This document shows, piece after piece, positions 45,356 through 56,591 of a DNA stretch of 64,000 nucleotides. Under the pieces are notes generated by a model. The model saw only the letters and a program-made list of their open reading frames with translations, did not search any database and was not told where the DNA came from. Position numbers and translations under genes: made by a program. The DNA comes from Rebecca billardiae RCC1528. Taxonomy: Eukaryota > Protista > Haptophyta. The first letter of the stretch is position 1. Each line of letters starts with the position of its first letter. The stretch is from NCBI GenBank assembly GCA_965240325.2, contig OZ251244.1:1178001-1242000 (forward strand), read 5' to 3'.

Positions 45356-46747
45356 AAACCGGGCCTAAGCGCAACCGACCCGTTGCACGGGTGAGTAACC
45401 GTGAGCGTATGAAAAAACGACAAGCGTATGAAATCTCGCGGTTTTGTCGCTCGCGCTGCCGCATGGCTGACGTCCGCGCCGATCCGAGCGCAATGGTGCA
45501 TTGCGAAGCCGATTCGCAATGCACCAATCCAATCCGCATGTCAATCGACCCAACCGTCGCTGAGAACGAACGACAAAACCCAGGGCAGGTGTCCACCACG
45601 AAGCCACGCCGCGCGCGCGCTGGCAGCGTGAGCCGGCGCGGTTGCAAAGGGTTGCCCAAAGGCAGAGAGATCAGCCAATGCGGCTACCTTCGGCAAGCAC
45701 GCCACCTCAGCGTCAGCATCGGGTGGGGCCGTGAGGATACATGCCCTTGGATGCGGCTCCAGCCAAACGGCTCTCGACGCGGGGAGCCGCCATCGGCCGC
45801 GAGCGCGTACACGGATACACGTGCTGTCCTCGTGAACGAGGATTCAGGAGACGAGGCGCGGCCCGCGATGCGCAGGCAAGACCTAGGGAGTGGCTCACGC
45901 TTTGATCGCGGGTACGGGTACAGAAGGCGTGCGCACGCAACCACACCGCCTTCGTGAAGCGCGTGGGCAAGCTGCTGAAGCTCTCACGATGCGCGCTTAC
46001 TTCTCATCTCCGTGCGCTCGCCGACCGCTCACGCTGCCTTCCGCGCGGCGGACCTGGGAAACCTGCCACCTGGCGCGCACGACGCAGCGCGTAACGCGGA
46101 AGGTGGTAGATCTGCTGCCACGCTCCCGCTGCCGCCGCCGGCGGCGGCAGCGGCATGCCCACGATGCGGCGACGGTGCTGATGACTATCACTGCCAAAGT
46201 GTCGTTTTTTCGGCGCTCACGCGTGCAACGGGTCAACCTTTTGAAAGTGCATGTTGATGTGCATGGTCAGGGTCCTCCTCAACTACTGCATGTCGGCGTA
46301 CTGCGTGCGCGCGCGGCGCGCTGTTATTTACCGATGCATCACTTGGTGCTGGAAACATAGGCCATACACGGGCACTTGGAAGTGATCAAGTTTTGCTACC
46401 TATTCGCAATAAGTTGGATACTGGGAGCCGCCAGGCGCGCGCGGAGCGCCCTACGCTCACTTATTCGACCGAGCACGGACGGCCCTCGACTCTCGAGCTG
46501 CTCGCTCGCTCGTTCGCGTTCGCTTCGTCGCTGCGGCGCCCTGACCGGGGACGTGCGTGTCGGCGCCGCGTACGCCGCGGTGCGCGCGCGGTGGCGGGAG
46601 CCGGCCGGCCGCTGGTCTCCCCCTCGCGCTCTGCTCTCGCCCTCGCGCTCCGCTCCGGCTCTCCCCGAGGCGTCGCGCGCGTCTCGCTCGGTCCGGTCCG
46701 TCGCCAGGCCGTGCCGACGGCGCGCCCACAGCGCCCCGCTGCAAAGC

Positions 46748-47830
46748 ATGCGCGACGAGATCGCGGCGGCGGGGGCGGCGAGATCGCGGCGGAGGCGGCG
46801 GGCAACAGCCTGCCCGCGGGCGTGTTCGTCGCTCGAGGAGGAGCGCGCAAGGGCGAGCCGAGTCCGGAGCACGCTCACGAGCTTGTCGCTCGGACGCTTC
46901 GAGGATGAGTGAGCGCGCCGAGCACGCAGCGGAGATGAGCCGGATGCGCCCGGAGTTCGCGCAGCTGAAGGGCGAGCTCGAGCACGCGAGCTCGCTCCTC
47001 GACGCCGAGCGCGAGCTCCTCCTCAACTCGGTCGACGGCGGCGCTGAGGTGCAGCAGCGTGAGGACGAGCAGCCAGCCAGTCCCGAACGCTCGCAAGACA
47101 CTGCTGCACGCAAGCGGCGGCCACGTAGCGCGAGGAGCTGCGCTGGGAATGCGCCGCGCGCGTCGACGCGGCGATCACCGGGCTGCAGGCCTCGGCCGTC
47201 GACGCGTTGCGCACCCTCGCCGCCAGCCGCGACGAGTCCGCCGTCGAGCTGCAGCCGAGCTGCAGCCGAGCTGCGCGCGCAGATGGGCGGCGTCACAGGC
47301 ACACAGACACTGACAGACAGGCCGTGCATGCCAGCACGTGCGCGCGGAGGCGCTGTGCGCCGAGCTGGCGAAGCGCGACGCCGAGCGCGACGCGCTGCGC
47401 GACGTGGCGACGGACGCGCTGGGCGCGCGCGGCGCCCTCGTCGCGACGCCCCGTGCAGCAGCTCGAGCAGCCAGCTGTGCGGAGTAGACGGCCGTCGAGG
47501 CGATCGGCGCCGGTTCAGGAGCGCGCACAGGCTCCGAGCCTGCCGTTGGCTGGCCGCCGCCGTCTTCGAGGCCGCCGACGCGGCGGAGGAGGCGGCGGGC
47601 GAGCACGGCGGCGCGGTGGAGCAGGCGCGCACGCGCGGCGGCAGGCGCGACGCGCCGCTCGCCTCGTTCCACCCCGAGCTCCGCTCGCTCGGTCTCGGTG
47701 CGCGGCTGCGCAGCGGCAGGCCGGGGCAGCCGAGTGGCGCGCGCTCTCGCTCTGCCGGCACGAGGCGCGCCGGCTGAGCGACCAGCGGCCCGTCGTCGAG
47801 CGCATGGCGCAGCGCGAGCACCTCAAGCAG
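46748..47830 (+). pseudogene. Decayed coiled-coil gene fragment ending at a splice donor
   Basis: Heptad-rich E/A/R/L segments in shifting frames broken by small insertions; ends AAGCAG|GTGCGC followed by ~110 bp of typical CG-rich intron, then breaks off. Confidence 0.5.
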
Positions 47831-48999
47831 GTGCGCCCGCACGCGCGCACGCGCCGGCCCGCGCCGCGCGGCGCCTCTCGCCCTGCGCGCGCGCGCCGCC
47901 CCAGCGGCCGCTTCCCCGCGCGCGGCCCGCGCGGCGACAGTCCTCAGGCGAACTGTTACACATGTCAGACTGACAGTGACAGCCGACGGCCGACGGAGGG
48001 TGCACCGCGGGCCTCTAACTGCGTTGGTTCTACGGAAGGACCGCGGAACGCGGTCATTATAGCAGACATGTTATCACAGTTAGCAGTCACCACGGTCGGA
48101 TCACGTTACCGCGTTCGAATTTATTCAATCGACGAACAATAACGCGGCCTCACTTCCCGTCTTCCGCCGGGAGAGCGGGCCCGCGGGGTAGCTGCCACCG
48201 ACTAGCGTGGGGCCGTGCGCTGCCGCAATCTGTCTGCGCCCAGGCGGCAGTGATTCACGGATTGCCGCAGTACTATACAGTAACTACTAAGTGTCCGACG
48301 CCAGTGGCCGGCCGGCGAGTGCGCCACACCACGTTCTCGATGCCTCGGACCATTCGGACGCGCGTTGACTCTGAGCCGCGGGCACAGACCCAGTCTCGCG
48401 GCGCCGGCGCAGTGAGTGCGACCACGCGCCAAGCGCCCAGCTGCAGCGCGCAACGGCCTCAACGAATCAGCCATCTGGTCCGAGCAGCTCGGTCGACCAA
48501 GGCTCGTGATTCCGATCCGCGCCGGCACCCCCGTGTTGCCACGGTCAAGCGATTATTGGCAGGGGCGTGATTGCATCGTCTCGCGCGCACGTCGAGCTCA
48601 GGCGTCTGCTCAGTGCGCACGCGCTGTGTCAGCGCAGCTCGAGCACTGTGCCTCGTCGTCGTGGTCGGGCCGATGGTTCGTTCGGTGCTGTTTGTGTGAA
48701 ACGCTCGAGCGACGGAGCGAGGGGCCGTACTTGATTGACGGATGCGAAGCCTGAGCGGCAAGTAGGCGGTCGGGCACTGTCGTGCTGAGGGGCGTGGCCG
48801 CATCCGATCATCTTTCGCGCGCGTGTCGGCGATTGCAGGCGACGTGGTCGTACGTGCAACGTGACACAGCGGCGAGCTGCGGCGGACTGAGTGCCCGGTA
48901 CGGTTCCCCGTATAGGCCCGCCGGAGCATACTAGATAGACCGTACGACTCATCCGGTAGTAGACGACTGGCGGTCACTGCCTATACTACGCGCTGCATT

Positions 49000-51900
49000 T
49001 CACGTAGTCGGCTGCTGGGCGACTGAGTGGGCGAGCGGCGGGCGCGCACGCCAGAGGAATGACGGTCGGCGCGCGTGCGCACTGCCGTCCTCGCTGCTCC
49101 CCGCCCCGCGCCCGGCCGCGCCAGCCGTCTCGGCGGGCGCGGCGGCACCCGCCGCCGCAGAATCGCGGCGCTCTGTGCTGCTGCACGACAGTGCCCGCGC
49201 GCGGGCGGCGCGACCGGCACCGTCCGCGCGCGCGGGAGCGGGCACATCGAGAACTGCTATGCTCGCAAACGCTGCCTCGCTCCCGCCCGCCTGCGGCCGG
49301 CGCGCCACCCGCGGCGCGCGCGCAAGCCGCAGCGCGGCGAGCGCAGCTGGCGCGAGCGCGTCAAGCCCAAGTGTGGCGCGCGCGCCGCCGCTCGCTGCCT
49401 CCGCGTCGTCGGCGGCACTCGGTGCGGCGGCGGGTGCCGACGCGAGCGAGCCGCTGCTGTCCTTGATGCGTGCCGGCTTGGCGGGCGCGCGCGCGTGCTC
49501 GCTCGCCGCGCCCACAGCCCCGCCGCGCCGCCGCCGTCCGAGCGGCAGGACCGCGGCGGCCGCGGCGGCGGCGGCCGCGCCCCGTCGCTTCCCGACGCGC
49601 GCGGACCGCGGCGGGCTGTGCGCGCGCGCGCGCACCGCGGCCGTGCGCAGCACAAAGGCCGCCACCACGAGCGCGAGCTGCACGAGGCAAGCGCCCATGA
49701 GCAGCCCACCGAGCGCCACGCCGTGCGCGCGGGCAAACTCGAGGTGCGTGCTGACGAAACGGCCGTAACCGTCGAGCCCGGCGTCGCAGAAGTCCTCCCG
49801 GCACTCGCGCAGCGAGAAGCCGTCGACTCGCTCGTCCAGCAGCGCGCACACGCCGGGCTGCGCGGCGATCGTGCCGTCGTGCCCCGAGATGTACTCGCAG
49901 AAGGCGTCTGCCGACGGGTCGAGCGCGGCGACTCCGATCGCGCCCGCCGCGCCCGCGCCGGCGTGCACGGGCATGCACGGCAGCGCGCGCCGCGCGCCGC
50001 CGTCCGCAGCCGCCGAGCCGTTGCGCAGCGCGGCGGTGGCGTTGGAGCGGGGCGAGCAGCACAGCTGGTACGTCTGGCACACGAAGCTCTCCACGCGGCG
50101 CAGTGACGCGGAGCCTGGCACGCCGAACCAGCGGCCGCGCGTCACGGTGCCGTTGCCGCCGCCGCCGCCGTCGGTCGGCGCGCCTTCCTTGGACGCGAGC
50201 GTCGTGAGCGCGGCGTTTTCGATCGTGTCCAGCGAGTGGACCCAGTGCAGCACGACGCAGGCGAGGGCGAGCTGGCCGAGCAGCGCGAGCAGGCTGAGCC
50301 CGCCGTACGCGCCCAGCCCGCACGGCTGCAGCCGCGCCGCCGCGCGCAGCGCACCCACGTTAAGGCCCGCGCACCCGGCGCCGCTGAGCGCGAGCGCGAG
50401 CAGCGCGTTTTTCGACAGGAACTCCTCGGCGGTGGAATAGAAGGCGAGGCCGTACACGCCGAAGCCGGCGAGCGTGCCGCCCACCGCGACGCCGAGCAGC
50501 GCGAACGCGCGCACGACCAGCGCCGCGCGCGCGTCCCGCGGCGTGCGCGGGCACAGCGAGTCGGCCAGCCTCGCCCCGAGCGCGCGCGCGCGGTCAAGGG
50601 CACACAGCAGGCCGACGGCCGGAGGCACCATCAGGAGCAGCAGCACGAGCCACGAGCGCCAGCCCGCGTCGACGCGCTCGGGCAGCGCGGGCACGCCCGC
50701 CGCGCGCACCGAGCCCTCCGGCTTGCGCCCGCACTCGAGCACCTCCGCGTCCACGCCCGCCGCGAGCCCTACCACTGATGAAACGGCGCCATCGATGAGG
50801 CACTCCGCGTCACAATGGCCGCCGCCGGTGCTCCCGGGAGCGCCGCCGACTCCGGAGGGCGGTGCGGCGCCGTCGTCGTGGCTCGCGGCGGGCGGCTCGG
50901 CGCACGCCGTGGGAGCGCACATCGTCGTGTCCGCGACCACCGAGTCCAGTGTCGGCCACGCGCGCGCGCACAGCTCGGCCGCCGACGCGTTCTGCGCGAG
51001 CTGCACCGCCGCGCGGTGCGCGCGCGCCTCGCACCGGCGCGAGACGAAGTCGCAGCCCTGGTTGAGGCCCCACGAGATGCACTCGGCGGCGGAGTAGTTG
51101 GCGAGGTAGTGCCCCAGGTCCTCCAGCGCCGCGAGCGTCAGCGCCGACACCGCGAACGGCGCCTCGCCGTAAGACATCACGTCCTCGCGCAGCAGGCGTG
51201 TCTCGGCGTGCGACGCGCGCCCAAAGTCCGGGTACGACATCAGCGGGAACCCGGACCAGCCGCCCGGACCGGCGGGGTCGTCGCAGCCGAAGTAGGCGGC
51301 GGCGACGTCGAAGGTGCGCGTGCCCGGGAGGAAGTGCCACACCGACTCGAGCCCGTCGTCCTCCGCCCCGGACGACGACGACGACGGCGGCGCGGCGGAC
51401 GCGCCCGCGCCGCCGCGCGCGCGCGGCACGCGCAAGTCGGCAACGACGCGCCGCCGCGTGCCGTCCGGAGCGAACACGTTCGTCCAGTGCTCGATGGCGT
51501 AGCCGAGGCCGTGGAAGAGCTCGTGCAGCACGAGCGCGCGCGTCTGCCGCACCTCCGCCTCGCTCGCCGCGCCCCACGCCGCCGGCTCCCGCCCGAGCGC
51601 GTGCCAGTCGAAAACGACCACCACCGGGCGCGTGCGCTCGTCGAGCGCACATGAGGACCCAGTGCCGGCGACGCCGTCGACGGGTGGCGGGTGGCGGACG
51701 TACAGAAGCACGTCGACGTCGCCCGCGCCGGCGGGGTCGTCGCACAGCTGGTCGCGCACGCGCAGCGCGTGCAGCTTCGAGCAGTCCGCCGCGCACCGCG
51801 CGTCGCCCTCGCCCACCGCGGTGTAGAAGCCGATATAGGTCCCCACGGAGCGGCGCAGGCTGAGCGGACGACTCCCATCGCGCGCGCGCACGCGCAGGAA

Positions 51901-52617
51901 CGCGCGCGCGTCCGCGAGCGCGTGCAGCGTGGCGTTGATGGCGTACGCGCGCATCGGCTCGGTGAGCACGTCGGACGGCTCGCACTCCAGCCAGCAGTCC
52001 GACGAGAGCCCGCCGTCCGCGATGTGCGCGCGGTCGCACCGCTCCGAGCCGTCGGCTGGCGGCGCGTCGCGCGCGCGTGGCCAACCGACACGCACCCAGT
52101 CGCCCGCGCGGAAGCACACGGAGTGCGGCGCGGCGGTGTCTTCGTACAGCGCGTCGAACATCGGCTTGATCCGGATCGGTCGGGTGTTCGCCTCCGTCAG
52201 CACCTCGTCGCCCTCGTCCGCGCCGCCGCCCGCGTCGTCGTCGCCGGCGGCCGCGAGCCGGCGGCCGCGCCGCTGCAGCCACCACCACGCGGCCCGGAGG
52301 CGACCGGCCGGGCGCGCGGGCTCCTGAGGGTGCGCGTGGGGCAGCACGCCGTACGCCAGGCGCACGGCATGCCCGAGTGCCACCGCGGACACGTCGCGCT
52401 CCGTCCGCCCCGCGCGCGCGCCGAGCCGGCGGCGGCGCGCGGCCGCATCCCGTCTCGCCTCGCGCAGCTGCCGCCACACGCGCGCGCCGACCTCAGCCGA
52501 GTGCACGTCGAGCGGCGTGGGGAGCGTGGCGGTTGGCGTGCTCGGCGCATGCAACGCGGACGCTTCGAGCGCGAGCGCGAGCGCGAGGGCGACGGCGCCG
52601 CAACGGCCCGCGCGCAT
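49000..52617 (-). CDS. Leishmanolysin (M8/GP63) metalloprotease fused to a TM anchor and a tetraspanin-like 4TM domain (~1205 aa)
   Basis: Signal peptide; HELFHGLG (51525-51502), SHAETR...EDVMS Met-turn, ALTLAALEDLGHY.ANY...WG.NQGCDF; five C-terminal hydrophobic helices with YQLCCS loop. Confidence 0.88.
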   Translation of the reverse strand: MRAGRCGAVALALALALEASALHAPSTPTATLPTPLDVHSAEVGARVWRQLREARRDAAARRRRLGARAGRTERDVSAVALGHAVRLAYGVLPHAHPQEPARPAGRLRAAWWWLQRRGRRLAAAGDDDAGGGADEGDEVLTEANTRPIRIKPMFDALYEDTAAPHSVCFRAGDWVRVGWPRARDAPPADGSERCDRAHIADGGLSSDCWLECEPSDVLTEPMRAYAINATLHALADARAFLRVRARDGSRPLSLRRSVGTYIGFYTAVGEGDARCAADCSKLHALRVRDQLCDDPAGAGDVDVLLYVRHPPPVDGVAGTGSSCALDERTRPVVVVFDWHALGREPAAWGAASEAEVRQTRALVLHELFHGLGYAIEHWTNVFAPDGTRRRVVADLRVPRARGGAGASAAPPSSSSSGAEDDGLESVWHFLPGTRTFDVAAAYFGCDDPAGPGGWSGFPLMSYPDFGRASHAETRLLREDVMSYGEAPFAVSALTLAALEDLGHYLANYSAAECISWGLNQGCDFVSRRCEARAHRAAVQLAQNASAAELCARAWPTLDSVVADTTMCAPTACAEPPAASHDDGAAPPSGVGGAPGSTGGGHCDAECLIDGAVSSVVGLAAGVDAEVLECGRKPEGSVRAAGVPALPERVDAGWRSWLVLLLLMVPPAVGLLCALDRARALGARLADSLCPRTPRDARAALVVRAFALLGVAVGGTLAGFGVYGLAFYSTAEEFLSKNALLALALSGAGCAGLNVGALRAAARLQPCGLGAYGGLSLLALLGQLALACVVLHWVHSLDTIENAALTTLASKEGAPTDGGGGGNGTVTRGRWFGVPGSASLRRVESFVCQTYQLCCSPRSNATAALRNGSAAADGGARRALPCMPVHAGAGAAGAIGVAALDPSADAFCEYISGHDGTIAAQPGVCALLDERVDGFSLRECREDFCDAGLDGYGRFVSTHLEFARAHGVALGGLLMGACLVQLALVVAAFVLRTAAVRARAHSPPRSARVGKRRGAAAAAAAAAVLPLGRRRRGGAVGAASEHARAPAKPARIKDSSGSLASAPAAAPSAADDAEAASGGARATLGLDALAPAALAALRLARAPRVARRPQAGGSEAAFASIAVLDVPAPARADGAGRAARARALSCSSTERRDSAAAGAAAPAETAGAAGRGAGSSEDGSAHARRPSFLWRARPPLAHSVAQQPTT

Positions 52618-53632
52618 CCGCTCGACGGCCGGCCGGCGCGAAAAGTGAGGTCGCGCCGGGCGCGGACTGGTCCGCGCGCGCATCCTGGGCTCGCTCGCTT
52701 TCGGTGGCGGCAAATCTGGGATCGCGAGATCTTGCACTGCTGTTGAGTGTATCCGTTAGGTTACGGTAGGAGTACGTACGGGTACGGAGCGACGCAGAAT
52801 GGCTGCCGTTCAGCGGCGCCTCTTGCTTGGGTGTACTTTGTCCTCGGCAGAGGCCGCAAGGGCGATCAGACGGACCAGCGCCGGTGGGCATGTCGGCGGC
52901 TTGGCCTTTGTAATTGTCAGCAGATGTGACGGAGAAGGCCTGATGGTGTTTATTTCAGTTCAACCAGTGCTGGTGCGGCGCGATCGGTCGGATGCGCGCC
53001 GGTTTTGTCAGCTGGTCTCGGTACGAGTAGCAGGCTGTGTCGACGAGTGGTCTGCGCCGTGCGTGTGCGATGGTGATCTCTCCCACGTTGAGTTGCTCTA
53101 CCGCGCAGATGCCAGCTGCCCCTCGCGCGACCCTCGGATCGACTACCCGGGAGGCCACCAGGTGGACACTCGGTTCACGCGCGCTGCCGGGCACGCAAAC
53201 GGCCTGCACTCTCGGTCTCATGAGTCCGTGGGGCGTAGGCTCGCCGGGCGTCCGGCACTTGCGTAGTGGCTGACGCCGCGCCGCACGCATGCTCGCATGC
53301 GCATCGCCATGCGCGCTACGCATGCGGTGTCGCCACGTGCGCCTTCGGCAGTCATCGGCACGCTTCGTCACAGGTGGCAGTAGGTACTGACTAGTACCCA
53401 AGTAGTGCCCTGGATACAACAGCGGTTACAGGTATCATGACTAGGTACCCGGTGAGTTTGGTCAAGGACTTCTCTGGAGACTGAAATTGCGACGATCATA
53501 TGATGATACCAGCCTATTGATCAATGGCAGCATCGGCCCAATTCGAACCACAATCTCAAATCTCGCCGTTTATCGTGCGGCGGCCTGATTACGAATTCGT
53601 TGCGGATTCCCACCGCCGACGAGTCGACGACA

Positions 53633-56591
53633 GAGGCCACTCCACCGAAATCGAGCCCGTCCAGGGCTTCGGCCGCCCACTGGCGTCCAGGGCTTAGCCC
53701 TGGACGCGCCGAGCGCGTCCAGGGCTCCGCTCGCCAGCGCGAGATAGTATTGAGCTCATAGGCGATGCCGCCGCGCCGCGTGCGCGCGCTCCGTCTCGCG
53801 CTGGCTGCGGCCGCGAGCGCGTGCGGCGAGCCGTCGCGTGCGGTCGCGCACCGGCGCTGAGGTATGGTGTGCCCATCCGTGCCCTTGGCTCGTGCCCGCG
53901 CGCCCTCCTCCGCCGCTGCGTGGCGCGCGTGTGGTCGCGCCGCCTCGCTCGCTGGGCGCACCGAAAGCGCGAGCGCGCAACGAGTCACCTGTGGCGTGTC
54001 GGACCCAGCGCGTGCGCGCCTGGCGTGTGGTTTGTGTTTGACATGGCCTTGGTCACGCGCGGCGCCGGCCGTGCCCAGCGTCTGACCGCGCGCAACGCGC
54101 ATAGTACTGGTGGTCCCGGCTGGGTCGAGCCGACCCCTCGGGGCTCGGCGGCACCCAGCCACTCGTAGGCGGCCGCGATGGGTCGACGCGTCGGATGGGT
54201 GGCGGCTACACACCATGCTGGTCGCGCACTGCCGCGTGCAGGGCGGTTGCACGGTGACAAGTGCCCCCGCGATCGTGCCGCGCTCGGGTACGAACAGGAG
54301 CAGTATGTTGCATGCGTGCCGCCGGCAGGTGGCGAGCTGGGGCGTGCTGGTCGGTGTGGCTGACGGGCGCGCTCGCGCGCGTGGCATGAGCGAGCGCGCC
54401 GCCGCCCAAGCGTGCCGCCCACGCCGCGCGCCGCGCGCCGCGCGCCGCGCGGCCTACGTCGCGTCGGCGCTCGCGCGGCCGGCAGCTCCGGACGGCAGCG
54501 TGGCCGGAAGGCGGCACGGGCACCATGCTGCTCAAGGCTGGCAAACAAGCTGCAGTAGTCGTCCCTCATCTTGGCATACGGAAACAGCTAGCACGCATGA
54601 TGAGATGGATACACAGCAGTTCAGCAGTCTGCATGCTCCGTGACCGTGACGGGGTATTCGGAAAGTGTTCAGCTGACAAATCTCGCCTGCCTGAGCTATC
54701 TGTCAGGCTGTGTGCGTCTCTTCTTCTTAGTCAGTGTTGTGCTCAGGCCGGCCACCGTAGAAGGGTGGGAGCTGGCGAACTTCTCCACCGGGTACCGAGC
54801 CTATCATAGCCATCAGCGCGCGCATACTGTAGCAGCGGTTCAGCCTTGTCACTGGCTAGCATCCCGTACTTGGTAGCTGCCGAGCAGCTCCGCGCGCTGA
54901 GCGTCGTGTTCAGCTGTGATGTATGATGAGCAGCGCAGCTTGCTCGCACCACGCGCGCACCCTCGCGTGCACCCACTAGACCAGTGTTGATGTGAGCCAC
55001 CGACAGTGATAGGTCGGCACGAATGTGTGCAACAGAAGCCTCGCTAGGAACTGCTGTCATGAAAGTGCTGTCAGCTGACGCTCCAGTGAATCGCTTGTTA
55101 CGCACTGCTTACAATATCATTCCATTTCCCACAGTCGTTCATCAGACGCCGTGGCCGTGGCAGGCGCCAACGCCACAACTGACGCCACTCTAGGCTCCAT
55201 GCTACTTCATTGAGGGCGTGGGCCCGCGCTACATGCTCAAACCAGCCGCGGCGAGCATCAGGTGCTTGAGGCGTGCGTGCGCTTGCAGCCGCTCAGAAGT
55301 ACAGTATTGAAGGCAGTGCCGCCACCGAGCCCGTGCAGCGTCCGAGCTACGCATCTCGACTCTGGCGCATGCGCAGGCTGCCGTAAGCCTCTGGGTCTCC
55401 ACCACAACGGGAGGAGGGGCGATGTATCACCTCGGTGCGTGTGCATACCTTCTGTTCACGTGTCTTGCGACCGGCCATCTTCATAGTCATCTACCCGAGC
55501 CTGCGCCAAGGGTTTGCGCCGCGGACGTCAGTCAGCCCGCTGTGCTGATATCACCGCAGAATCCGTGGGCAATGACGTACTTCAGGGTACGAGAAGACAC
55601 GCGGCATGCGGACGCCCATAGACGCAAGGCTGTGGCTATCAACCTCTTCACCCGCCGCCCATTTCGCGTACTAGTAAGGACCAGCTCTGCAGCTGGCACA
55701 CGACAGCCACTCGGACCAGTCACGCTGCCGTCCGGAGCTGCCGGCCGCGCGAGCGCCGACGCGACGTAGGCCGCGCGGCGCGCGGCGCGCGGCGTGCGGC
55801 GTGGGCGGCACGCTTGGGCGGCGGCGCGCTCGCTCATGCCACGCGCTCGAGCGCGCCCGTCAGCCACACCGACCAGCACGCCCCAGCTCGCCACCTGCCG
55901 GCGGCACGCATGCAACATACTGCTCCTGTTCGTACCCGAGCGCGGCACGATCGCGGGGGCACTTGTCACCGTGCAACCGCCCTGCACGCGGCAGTGCGCG
56001 ACCAGCATGGTGTGTAGCCGCCACCCATCCGACGCGTCGACCCATCGCGGCCGCCTACGAGTGGCTGGGTGCCGCCGAGCCCCGAGGGGTCGGCTCGACC
56101 CTAGCCGGGACCACCAGTACTATGCGCGTTGCGCGCGGTCAGACGCTGGGCACGGCCGGCGCCGCGCGTGACCAGGGCCATGTCAAACACAAACCACACG
56201 CCAGGCGCGCACGCGCTGGGTCCGACACGCCACAGGTGACTCGTCGCGCGCTCGCGCTTTCGGTGCGCCCAGCGAGCGAGGCGGCGCGACCACACGCGCG
56301 CCACGCAGCGGCGGAGGAGGGCGCGCGGGCACGAGCCAAGGGCACGGATGGGCACACCATACCTCAGCGCCGGTGCGCGACCGCACGCGACGGCTCGCCG
56401 CACGCGCTCGCGGCCGCAGCCAGCGCGAGACGGAGCGCGCGCACGCGGCGCGGCGGCATCGCCTATGAGCTCAATACTATCTCGCGCTGGCGAGCGGAGC
56501 CCTGGACGCGCTCGGCGCGTCCAGGGCTAAGCCCTGGACGCCAGTGGGCGGCCGAAGCCCTGGACGGGCTCGATTTCGGTGGAGTGGCCTC
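53633..56591. mobile_element. Unclassified non-autonomous element with ~870-bp TIRs and 5-bp TSD
   Basis: TIRs 53633-54502 and 55721-56591 (about five differences); direct repeat CGACA at 53628-53632 and 56592-56596; termini GAGGCC...GGCCTC. Confidence 0.9.

Follow-up and report, generated by a model that had tools for sequence, protein, structure and literature searches.

Does a single gene of the haptophyte alga Rebecca billardiae RCC1528 encode both a leishmanolysin-type (M8) metalloprotease and a tetraspanin? The question is raised by a long minus-strand open reading frame (ORF) in the window analysed here, a stretch of 64,000 nucleotides from contig OZ251244.1 (GenBank assembly GCA_965240325.2, positions 1,178,001 to 1,242,000), in which a first-pass annotation had read an M8 protease, one transmembrane (TM) helix and a tetraspanin-like four-TM region in one chain. 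Tetraspanins are regarded as non-covalent organisers of their partners, and the best-understood case is the control of the sheddase ADAM10 by the TspanC8 subgroup (Tspan5, 10, 14, 15, 17 and 33). TspanC8 proteins bind ADAM10 via extracellular regions and govern its exit from the endoplasmic reticulum and trafficking, its localisation and its choice of substrate (PMC4751363, PMC5490636). The component families of the protein described here are known; its M8-tetraspanin architecture is new and, as judged by sequence comparison, defines a conserved and so far undescribed family. Literature on leishmanolysin/Peptidase_M8, tetraspanins, haptophytes and Emiliania huxleyi, with subscription journals outside the coverage, yielded no description of such a fusion; where both families are named, M8 proteases and tetraspanins appear as separate cargoes of parasite vesicles.

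The minus-strand ORF 49000-52737 is one unbroken frame of 1245 codons (1245 aa). The G+C content of its third codon positions (GC3) is 0.86-0.98 in each 50-codon block from codon 51 to about codon 1100, in the order GC3 > GC1 > GC2, and the signal runs across the junction between protease and tetraspanin without a break. High GC3 with lower GC1 and GC2 indicates coding in a single frame through both domains and the junction between them. Met41 lies at position 52617, the upper limit given in the first-pass annotation, and opens a typical signal peptide; the ORF check, GC3 and translation bear out that ORF and all of its coordinates. The fusion gene is present as one copy in the 72-Mb genome.

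The C-terminal module has, by prediction, the tetraspanin layout of four TM helices with short first outer and inner loops, a large second outer loop and cytoplasmic ends. Four TM helices, a short TM1-TM2 loop and a large Cys-rich loop had been proposed at the outset and are confirmed by hydropathy and by loop lengths of 15 and ∼ 170 residues; the position given for QLCCS is exact (aa 891-895, 50067-50053). An exhaustive HMMER scan of 1.8 billion representatives recovered 109 relatives of the module at E ≤ 1e-3, 51 of them at E ≤ 1e-10, and at the sequence level these relatives, together with the conserved loop cysteines, far exceed chance. Word-index protein searches with the four-TM region, over fusion-length and stand-alone-length ranges, gave no matches; given the 109 HMMER relatives these blanks are uninformative, and the Ala/Gly/Leu-rich query probably swamped the word index. 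In an ESM feature search tetraspanin clusters made up 29 of the 30 nearest (best score 0.92), which we count as a lead only. The gathering score of the Pfam Tetraspanin family (PF00335) is passed by four relatives, P0023 (43.7 bits), P0059 (36.4), P0038 (36.1) and P0050 (32.4), whose matches cover approximately positions 1-222 of 225, the loop and TM4 included; against the window module the same four have HMMER E-values of 2.5e-16 to 6.4e-11. When a family profile of 32 modules was compared with PDB sequences, tetraspanins alone scored below E 1e-3 and filled the top seven places, among them CD53 (2.3e-9), CD9, Tspan7, CD81, Tspan15 (2.3e-4) and UPK1B, all in register over TM1-TM3.

All eight cysteines of the large loop are invariant in alignments of 20 and of 32 sequences. 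In an alignment of 35 sequences five of them are invariant, and C921 and C947 are conserved in at least 90%. The family signature reads Y-x-x-C-C-[R/E]-D-P, followed by D-P-S-x-x-x-F-C and a C-x4-C pair; an extra cysteine five residues before the CC pair departs from the textbook tetraspanin. The count of eight loop cysteines equals that of the TspanC8 type, a comparison of number in which spacing has no part. The polar Gln residues pointed out in the first pass, in LLGQLAL of TM3 and LVQLAL of TM4, are a family feature: the position of Q822 is Q or E in 29 of the 35 sequences and that of Q1020 in 30.

The predicted fold points the same way. An AlphaFold2 (AF2) model of the module, built on the family alignment, had a predicted local distance difference test score (pLDDT) of 84.5 and a predicted template modelling score of 0.77. 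Its long helices span 44-76, 87-113, 116-163 and 294-350 in module numbering; TM3 continues into loop helix A, the last loop helix continues into TM4, and a helix at 187-205 ends at the CC pair. VIA-align gave Z-scores of 15.1 for Tspan15 (from the ADAM10 complex), 15.0 for CD53, 14.6 for CD9 and 13.9 for CD81, the top match, Tspan15, having a root-mean-square deviation of 3.1 over 133 residues; the next unrelated chain in this Foldseek-seeded list scored Z 7.5. An unbiased VIA-align scan of 48,161 chains was again led by the first three of these, aligned from TM1 to TM4, followed at Z 10.0 by generic helical hairpins. The tetraspanin fold that had been suspected in the C-terminal region is therefore found, by a Z of ∼ 15 with a gap to unrelated chains and by sequence homology as well. 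On the combined evidence of alignments and models, the four-TM module is a genuine tetraspanin homologue.

The protease half is equally recognizable. Pfam Peptidase_M8 (PF01457) matched the fusion protein with 72 bits (E 5.5e-20; gathering cut-off 21 bits). Leishmanolysin (1LML) was matched by sequence at E 4.4e-9, with H510 and M521 paired with the third zinc ligand and the Met-turn, and it was the top Foldseek match of the full-length AF2 model (E 1.2e-11, probability 1.00, 394 columns). Among 18 full-length relatives H510 is invariant and the Met-turn position is Met (or I/L). Since HExxH, the third His and the Met-turn are kept in these relatives, the M8 domain should be catalytically intact and we expect an active enzyme. 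Cysteines 553, 562, 569, 590, 612, 642, 646 and 669 of the membrane-proximal stalk are conserved family-wide. A pro-peptide with the HxCxHD cysteine-switch motif is typical of the M8 family and not strictly defining; by-eye reading of aa 41-200 of the fusion protein found no such motif. Leishmanolysin/GP63 (MEROPS M8; 1LML) and the one M8 paralogue in the genome share with the fusion protein the HExxH motif, a distant third His, the Met-turn and the overall fold. Classical M8 proteases are anchored by glycosylphosphatidylinositol or by a single TM helix, whereas the fusion clade is divergent and tetraspanin-linked, and the HxCxHD motif that we did not see in the fusion protein is present in the paralogue.

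The paralogue, sole other M8 gene of the genome (G000:C7:1384678-1386252 (+), locus L002:1258-3789), encodes a leishmanolysin of the canonical type-I form; its 843 aa comprise a signal peptide, HxCxHD, a single TM helix and a Pro/Ser-rich tail. Its Pfam score is 258 bits, compared with 72 bits for the fusion protein, and it is likely a model for the unfused ancestor.

One further helix lies between the two halves. The single TM helix previously placed at ∼ 50660-50595 was confirmed as TM0 (aa 696-714, 50652-50596, by the narrower estimate and 50593-50661 by the wider one); it occurs in all full-length members of the family, as does a conserved Cys-Pro in the short cytoplasmic linker behind it. 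The positive-inside rule fits: Arg is abundant in the loops TM0-TM1 and TM2-TM3 and in the residues behind TM4, and acidic residues mark the TM1-TM2 loop. Both the M8 part and the large loop contain N-x-S/T sequons. From this distribution of charges and sequons the protease and the large loop are predicted to lie on the same outer or luminal face, and the four-TM module is predicted to begin in the cytoplasm, as tetraspanins require. We infer that TM0 is the retained type-I anchor of the protease, which carries the chain from the outside to the cytoplasm. Cys729 of the linker is a candidate palmitoylation site. Taken together, the comparisons and models show that one chain combines an intact ectoprotease with a true tetraspanin and that its predicted topology is compatible with this.

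The architecture is not a peculiarity of this alga. It was tallied over the 109 representatives with local profiles taken from the family alignment. The M8 catalytic domain, stalk and tetraspanin are all present in 23, and 9 more begin inside the stalk; nearly all of the remaining 77 are fragments that start inside the module or within ∼ 60 residues of it, one example starting at base 3 of its contig. Among relatives with enough N-terminal sequence, 32 have M8 parts and 3 do not; local profiles found no M8 signal in P0050, P0066 and P0090, which have more than 90 upstream residues. A search for complete stand-alone members of the loop subtype gave short matches that were nearly all contig-edge or in-module fragments. 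The order M8-TM0-tetraspanin is found in single assembled transcripts of relatives (two from MMETSP, one from Trinity), and one relative transcript has an in-frame stop before the ATG and a single ORF of 925 codons. Database relatives that share the M8-TM0-four-TM architecture, 25-36% identical, include an annotated chromosome-level gene model of Prymnesium parvum, KAL1504838.1 (UniRef A0AB34IU09, ‘Metalloendopeptidase’). Further members come from a 90% cluster to which Cladocopium goreaui belongs and from single-cell genomes of Picozoa, so that the fusion is spread over haptophytes, dinoflagellates and Picozoa. In the databases, members of the family bear the label hypothetical or ‘Metalloendopeptidase’, and Pfam is silent on the tetraspanin part of the Prymnesium protein.

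Two relatives have additional modules. P0059 (L012:4001-8056 (+), metagenome contig ERZ27317592 k141_254144) is an unbroken ORF of 1351 codons with GC3 of 0.88-1.0 throughout; it starts with the C-terminal part of M8, whose N-terminal half lies in the next ORF upstream, and continues through TM0 and the tetraspanin to a Ser/Gly linker, a pair of PA domains and a rhomboid protease domain. By topology the PA domains would be expected in the cytoplasm, an odd place for them. This set of domains brings to mind two animal pairs, ADAM10-tetraspanin and ADAM17-iRhom. P0100 (NCBI assembly contig, 1294 aa) carries on the cytoplasmic tail of its M8-tetraspanin fusion two calponin-homology (CH) domains (Pfam CH, 95.8 bits); these are of the actin-binding type and suggest, from domain content, a link between the fusion protein and the cytoskeleton.

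Several observations weigh against reading the locus as one chain with a true and functionally coupled tetraspanin half. Against PF00335 the window protein alone scored 16.4 bits (E 0.0076, TM1-TM3), where the gathering score is 32.1, and Foldseek, which ranked tetraspanins first for the module, did so with weak E-values (0.5-2.4). The Asn in TM1 of animal tetraspanins is missing, being Ser in the family and Ala in the window protein. Also missing is the glycine of the CCG motif, replaced by Ser here and by Arg or Glu in most relatives; of the tetraspanin-type loop motif claimed in the first-pass annotation, the CC pair is invariant and stands at the end of helix B, and the full CCG is not there (CCS in this protein). 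The lost glycine might be taken to mean that the module is no tetraspanin homologue and is instead another four-helix type (claudin/PMP22, MARVEL, MS4A or a novel one) that came to look alike by convergence and composition, as might the facts that matches to solved tetraspanins lie mainly in TM1-TM3 and that designed TM bundles appear at E 0.004. We give this explanation practically no credence: the above-threshold Pfam matches in relatives span model positions 1-225 with the loop and TM4, the unbiased scan of 48,161 chains was led by three tetraspanins aligned from TM1 to TM4, and no other four-TM family was seen. A further objection concerns the gene itself. Local G+C is 75-79%, chance ORFs of 300-555 codons occur in other frames of the region, and two adjacent genes, for a single-TM M8 protease and a separate tetraspanin, could look merged where stop codons are rare (78% G+C). 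The 3′ end and the tail are less secure than the rest, as GC3 falls after codon 1100 and no similarity was found between the 215-aa tail and that of the nearest relative. One-gene status is positive in relatives, from single transcripts and the P. parvum gene model; for this alga it, and a single mRNA, are judged by sequence and comparison with these relatives. Even so, a pair of genes is highly improbable: GC3 is unbroken at the junction, just 24 residues with a conserved Cys-Pro separate TM0 from TM1, and the order is repeated in relatives of lower G+C content, in transcript assemblies and in a gene model at chromosome level, a recurrence that excludes two-gene read-through for practical purposes.

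A more serious competitor accepts the fusion and makes the tetraspanin only a multi-pass anchor or address label, for vesicles, the flagellar or haptonemal membrane or scale compartments, that neither touches nor regulates the protease. The interface between loop and protease is a proposal by analogy, and the full-length AF2 model is of moderate quality (pLDDT 67); the extra tail modules of relatives, two CH domains in P0100 and PA and rhomboid domains in P0059, suggest a scaffold for other partners; and M8 proteases and tetraspanins co-occur in studies of parasite extracellular vesicles with no known binding. Yet a generic anchor ought to turn up by itself or on other kinds of ectodomain, whereas the eight-Cys loop subtype is almost always attached to M8 (the 32 to 3 ratio given above); conservation of the loop also equals that of the catalytic domain. 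The near-exclusive attachment of the subtype to M8 proteins speaks for a specific relationship, and we consider a mere anchor or label unlikely. Membership of the TspanC8 subgroup was also considered and rejected, because the match to Tspan15 (E 2.3e-4) is weaker than those to CD53, CD9, Tspan7 and CD81 and the structural Z-scores are tied within 1.

We favour, as the probable explanation, a single-chain membrane ectoprotease with a built-in tetraspanin partner that acts in shedding or surface processing. The fusion may go back to a type-I M8 gene that was read through into a tetraspanin gene lying downstream. TM0 would have been retained since a tetraspanin has to begin in the cytoplasm, and the joining of an M8 gene to a downstream tetraspanin gene is therefore the simplest origin. 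By analogy with ADAM10-TspanC8, the large loop would lie next to the stalk near the membrane and determine how high the active site sits and which way it faces. The TM bundle, with its conserved Gln/Glu in TM3 and TM4, and the juxtamembrane Cys could direct the enzyme to vesicles or to membrane domains of the tetraspanin type, where it may work as a sheddase or surface-processing protease in the manner of ADAM10 under TspanC8. The tetraspanin would thus position and target the protease, a functional coupling suggested by the same analogy; a role of the partnership in shedding, vesicles or scales, as the first-pass annotation supposed, is plausible. We add a narrower proposal tentatively, as possible though doubtful: the large loop may dock on the Cys-rich M8 stalk and set active-site height and substrate choice, making the protein an independently evolved or very ancient metzincin-tetraspanin ‘molecular ruler’ in one chain. 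If so, by Rosetta-stone logic the free GP63-type proteases and tetraspanins of other protists would be physical partners, and the predicted partnerships would include parasites in which both families figure in extracellular-vesicle studies.

The comparison with ADAM10-TspanC8 (e.g. ADAM10-Tspan15, PDB 8ESV) has clear limits. Both systems have a membrane-anchored zinc protease of the metzincin clan with a Cys-rich stalk and a tetraspanin large loop with eight cysteines, and both ectodomains are on the same face. Here, in contrast, the TM helix of the protease itself links both parts into a single polypeptide; the protease is of family M8 where that of animals is M12B/ADAM; CC-S/R/E takes the place of CCG as loop signature; and binding between protease and tetraspanin is a proposal. 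By analogy the protein would work like the ADAM10-TspanC8 pair, but it belongs to neither family. As a single chain it is a natural counterpart of the animal pair, and it shows that proteases and tetraspanins are paired outside animals too. The fusion offers a system of defined 1:1 ratio in which to study how an enzyme is positioned by a tetraspanin, and it predicts partnerships of free GP63-like proteases with tetraspanins elsewhere. It also reveals a whole tetraspanin subfamily missed by standard annotation, since most members fall below the Pfam threshold and are labelled only as metalloendopeptidase. The features of the gene are collected in Table 1.

Table 1. Features of the M8-tetraspanin gene, listed from the N-terminus of the protein; coordinates are those of the window.
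Feature	Coordinates	Strand	Basis or remark
Whole coding sequence, Met41 to stop	49000..52617	minus	single exon as read; alternative ATG, Met19, at 52683
Signal peptide, aa 41-63	52549..52617	minus	hydrophobic peak aa 44-64 right after Met41; basic n-region
Arg/Ala-rich N-terminal region, aa 64-180	52198..52548	minus	pLDDT <50; no conserved columns
Peptidase M8 (leishmanolysin) catalytic domain, aa ∼ 181-552	51082..52197	minus	PF01457; 1LML sequence and fold matches
Zinc-binding HExxH (H405, E406, H409)	51511..51525	minus	conserved in 18/18 full-length family members
Third zinc ligand H510 and Met-turn M521	51175..51210	minus	aligned to the matching His/Met of 1LML
Cys-rich membrane-proximal stalk of M8 ectodomain, aa 553-690	50668..51081	minus	family-conserved cysteines
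TM0, aa 693-715	50593..50661	minus	hydropathy peak 2.45; additional helix ahead of the four-TM module in every full-length relative
Arg-rich cytoplasmic linker, 24 residues, with juxtamembrane Cys729-Pro	50524..50592	minus	C729 in at least 90% of sequences; CP column
Tetraspanin module, aa 739-1030	49648..50523	minus	profile, family and fold evidence
TM1, aa 739-763	50449-50523	minus	hydropathy
TM1-TM2 loop	between 50449 and 50403	minus	15 residues, acidic
TM2, aa 779-797	50347-50403	minus	hydropathy
TM2-TM3 loop	between 50347 and 50304	minus	14 residues, basic
TM3, aa 812-834	50236-50304	minus	hydropathy (narrower estimate aa 812-830); contains LLGQLAL
Large outer loop TM3-TM4, ∼ 170 aa	49723-50235	minus	8 Cys: 887, 893, 894, 921, 947, 964, 979, 984
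Loop signature C-x-T-Y-Q-x-C-C-S, aa 887-895	50053..50079	minus	end of loop helix B
TM4, aa 1006-1030	49648-49722	minus	hydropathy (narrower estimate aa 1008-1030); contains LVQLAL
Ala/Arg/Gly-rich low-complexity cytoplasmic tail, 215 aa	49003..49647	minus	very basic; GC3 0.72-0.80 after codon 1100

The N-terminal region at aa 64-180 is possibly a pro-region. The tail includes a run of nine Ala and lacks conservation, and the GC3 signal fades toward its end; it may be partly untranslated, or spliced out.

Ordinary tetraspanins were also sought in the same genome. The search returned a double tetraspanin-like ORF with eight TM helices, a low-complexity match and a multi-TM protein; none of these has the eight-Cys loop, so a free-standing paralogue was not found. 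The tetraspanin-like ORF (G000:C14:1681085-1681795 (-), loci L004/L007, 352 codons) has two weak tetraspanin matches in tandem (37.7 and 15.8 bits) and ∼ 8 TM helices, without a Cys-rich loop. On either side of the fusion gene, the flanks at 46457-47850 and 53521-54570 have a G+C content of 0.74-0.79 and long ORFs on both strands, and probably contain neighbouring genes.

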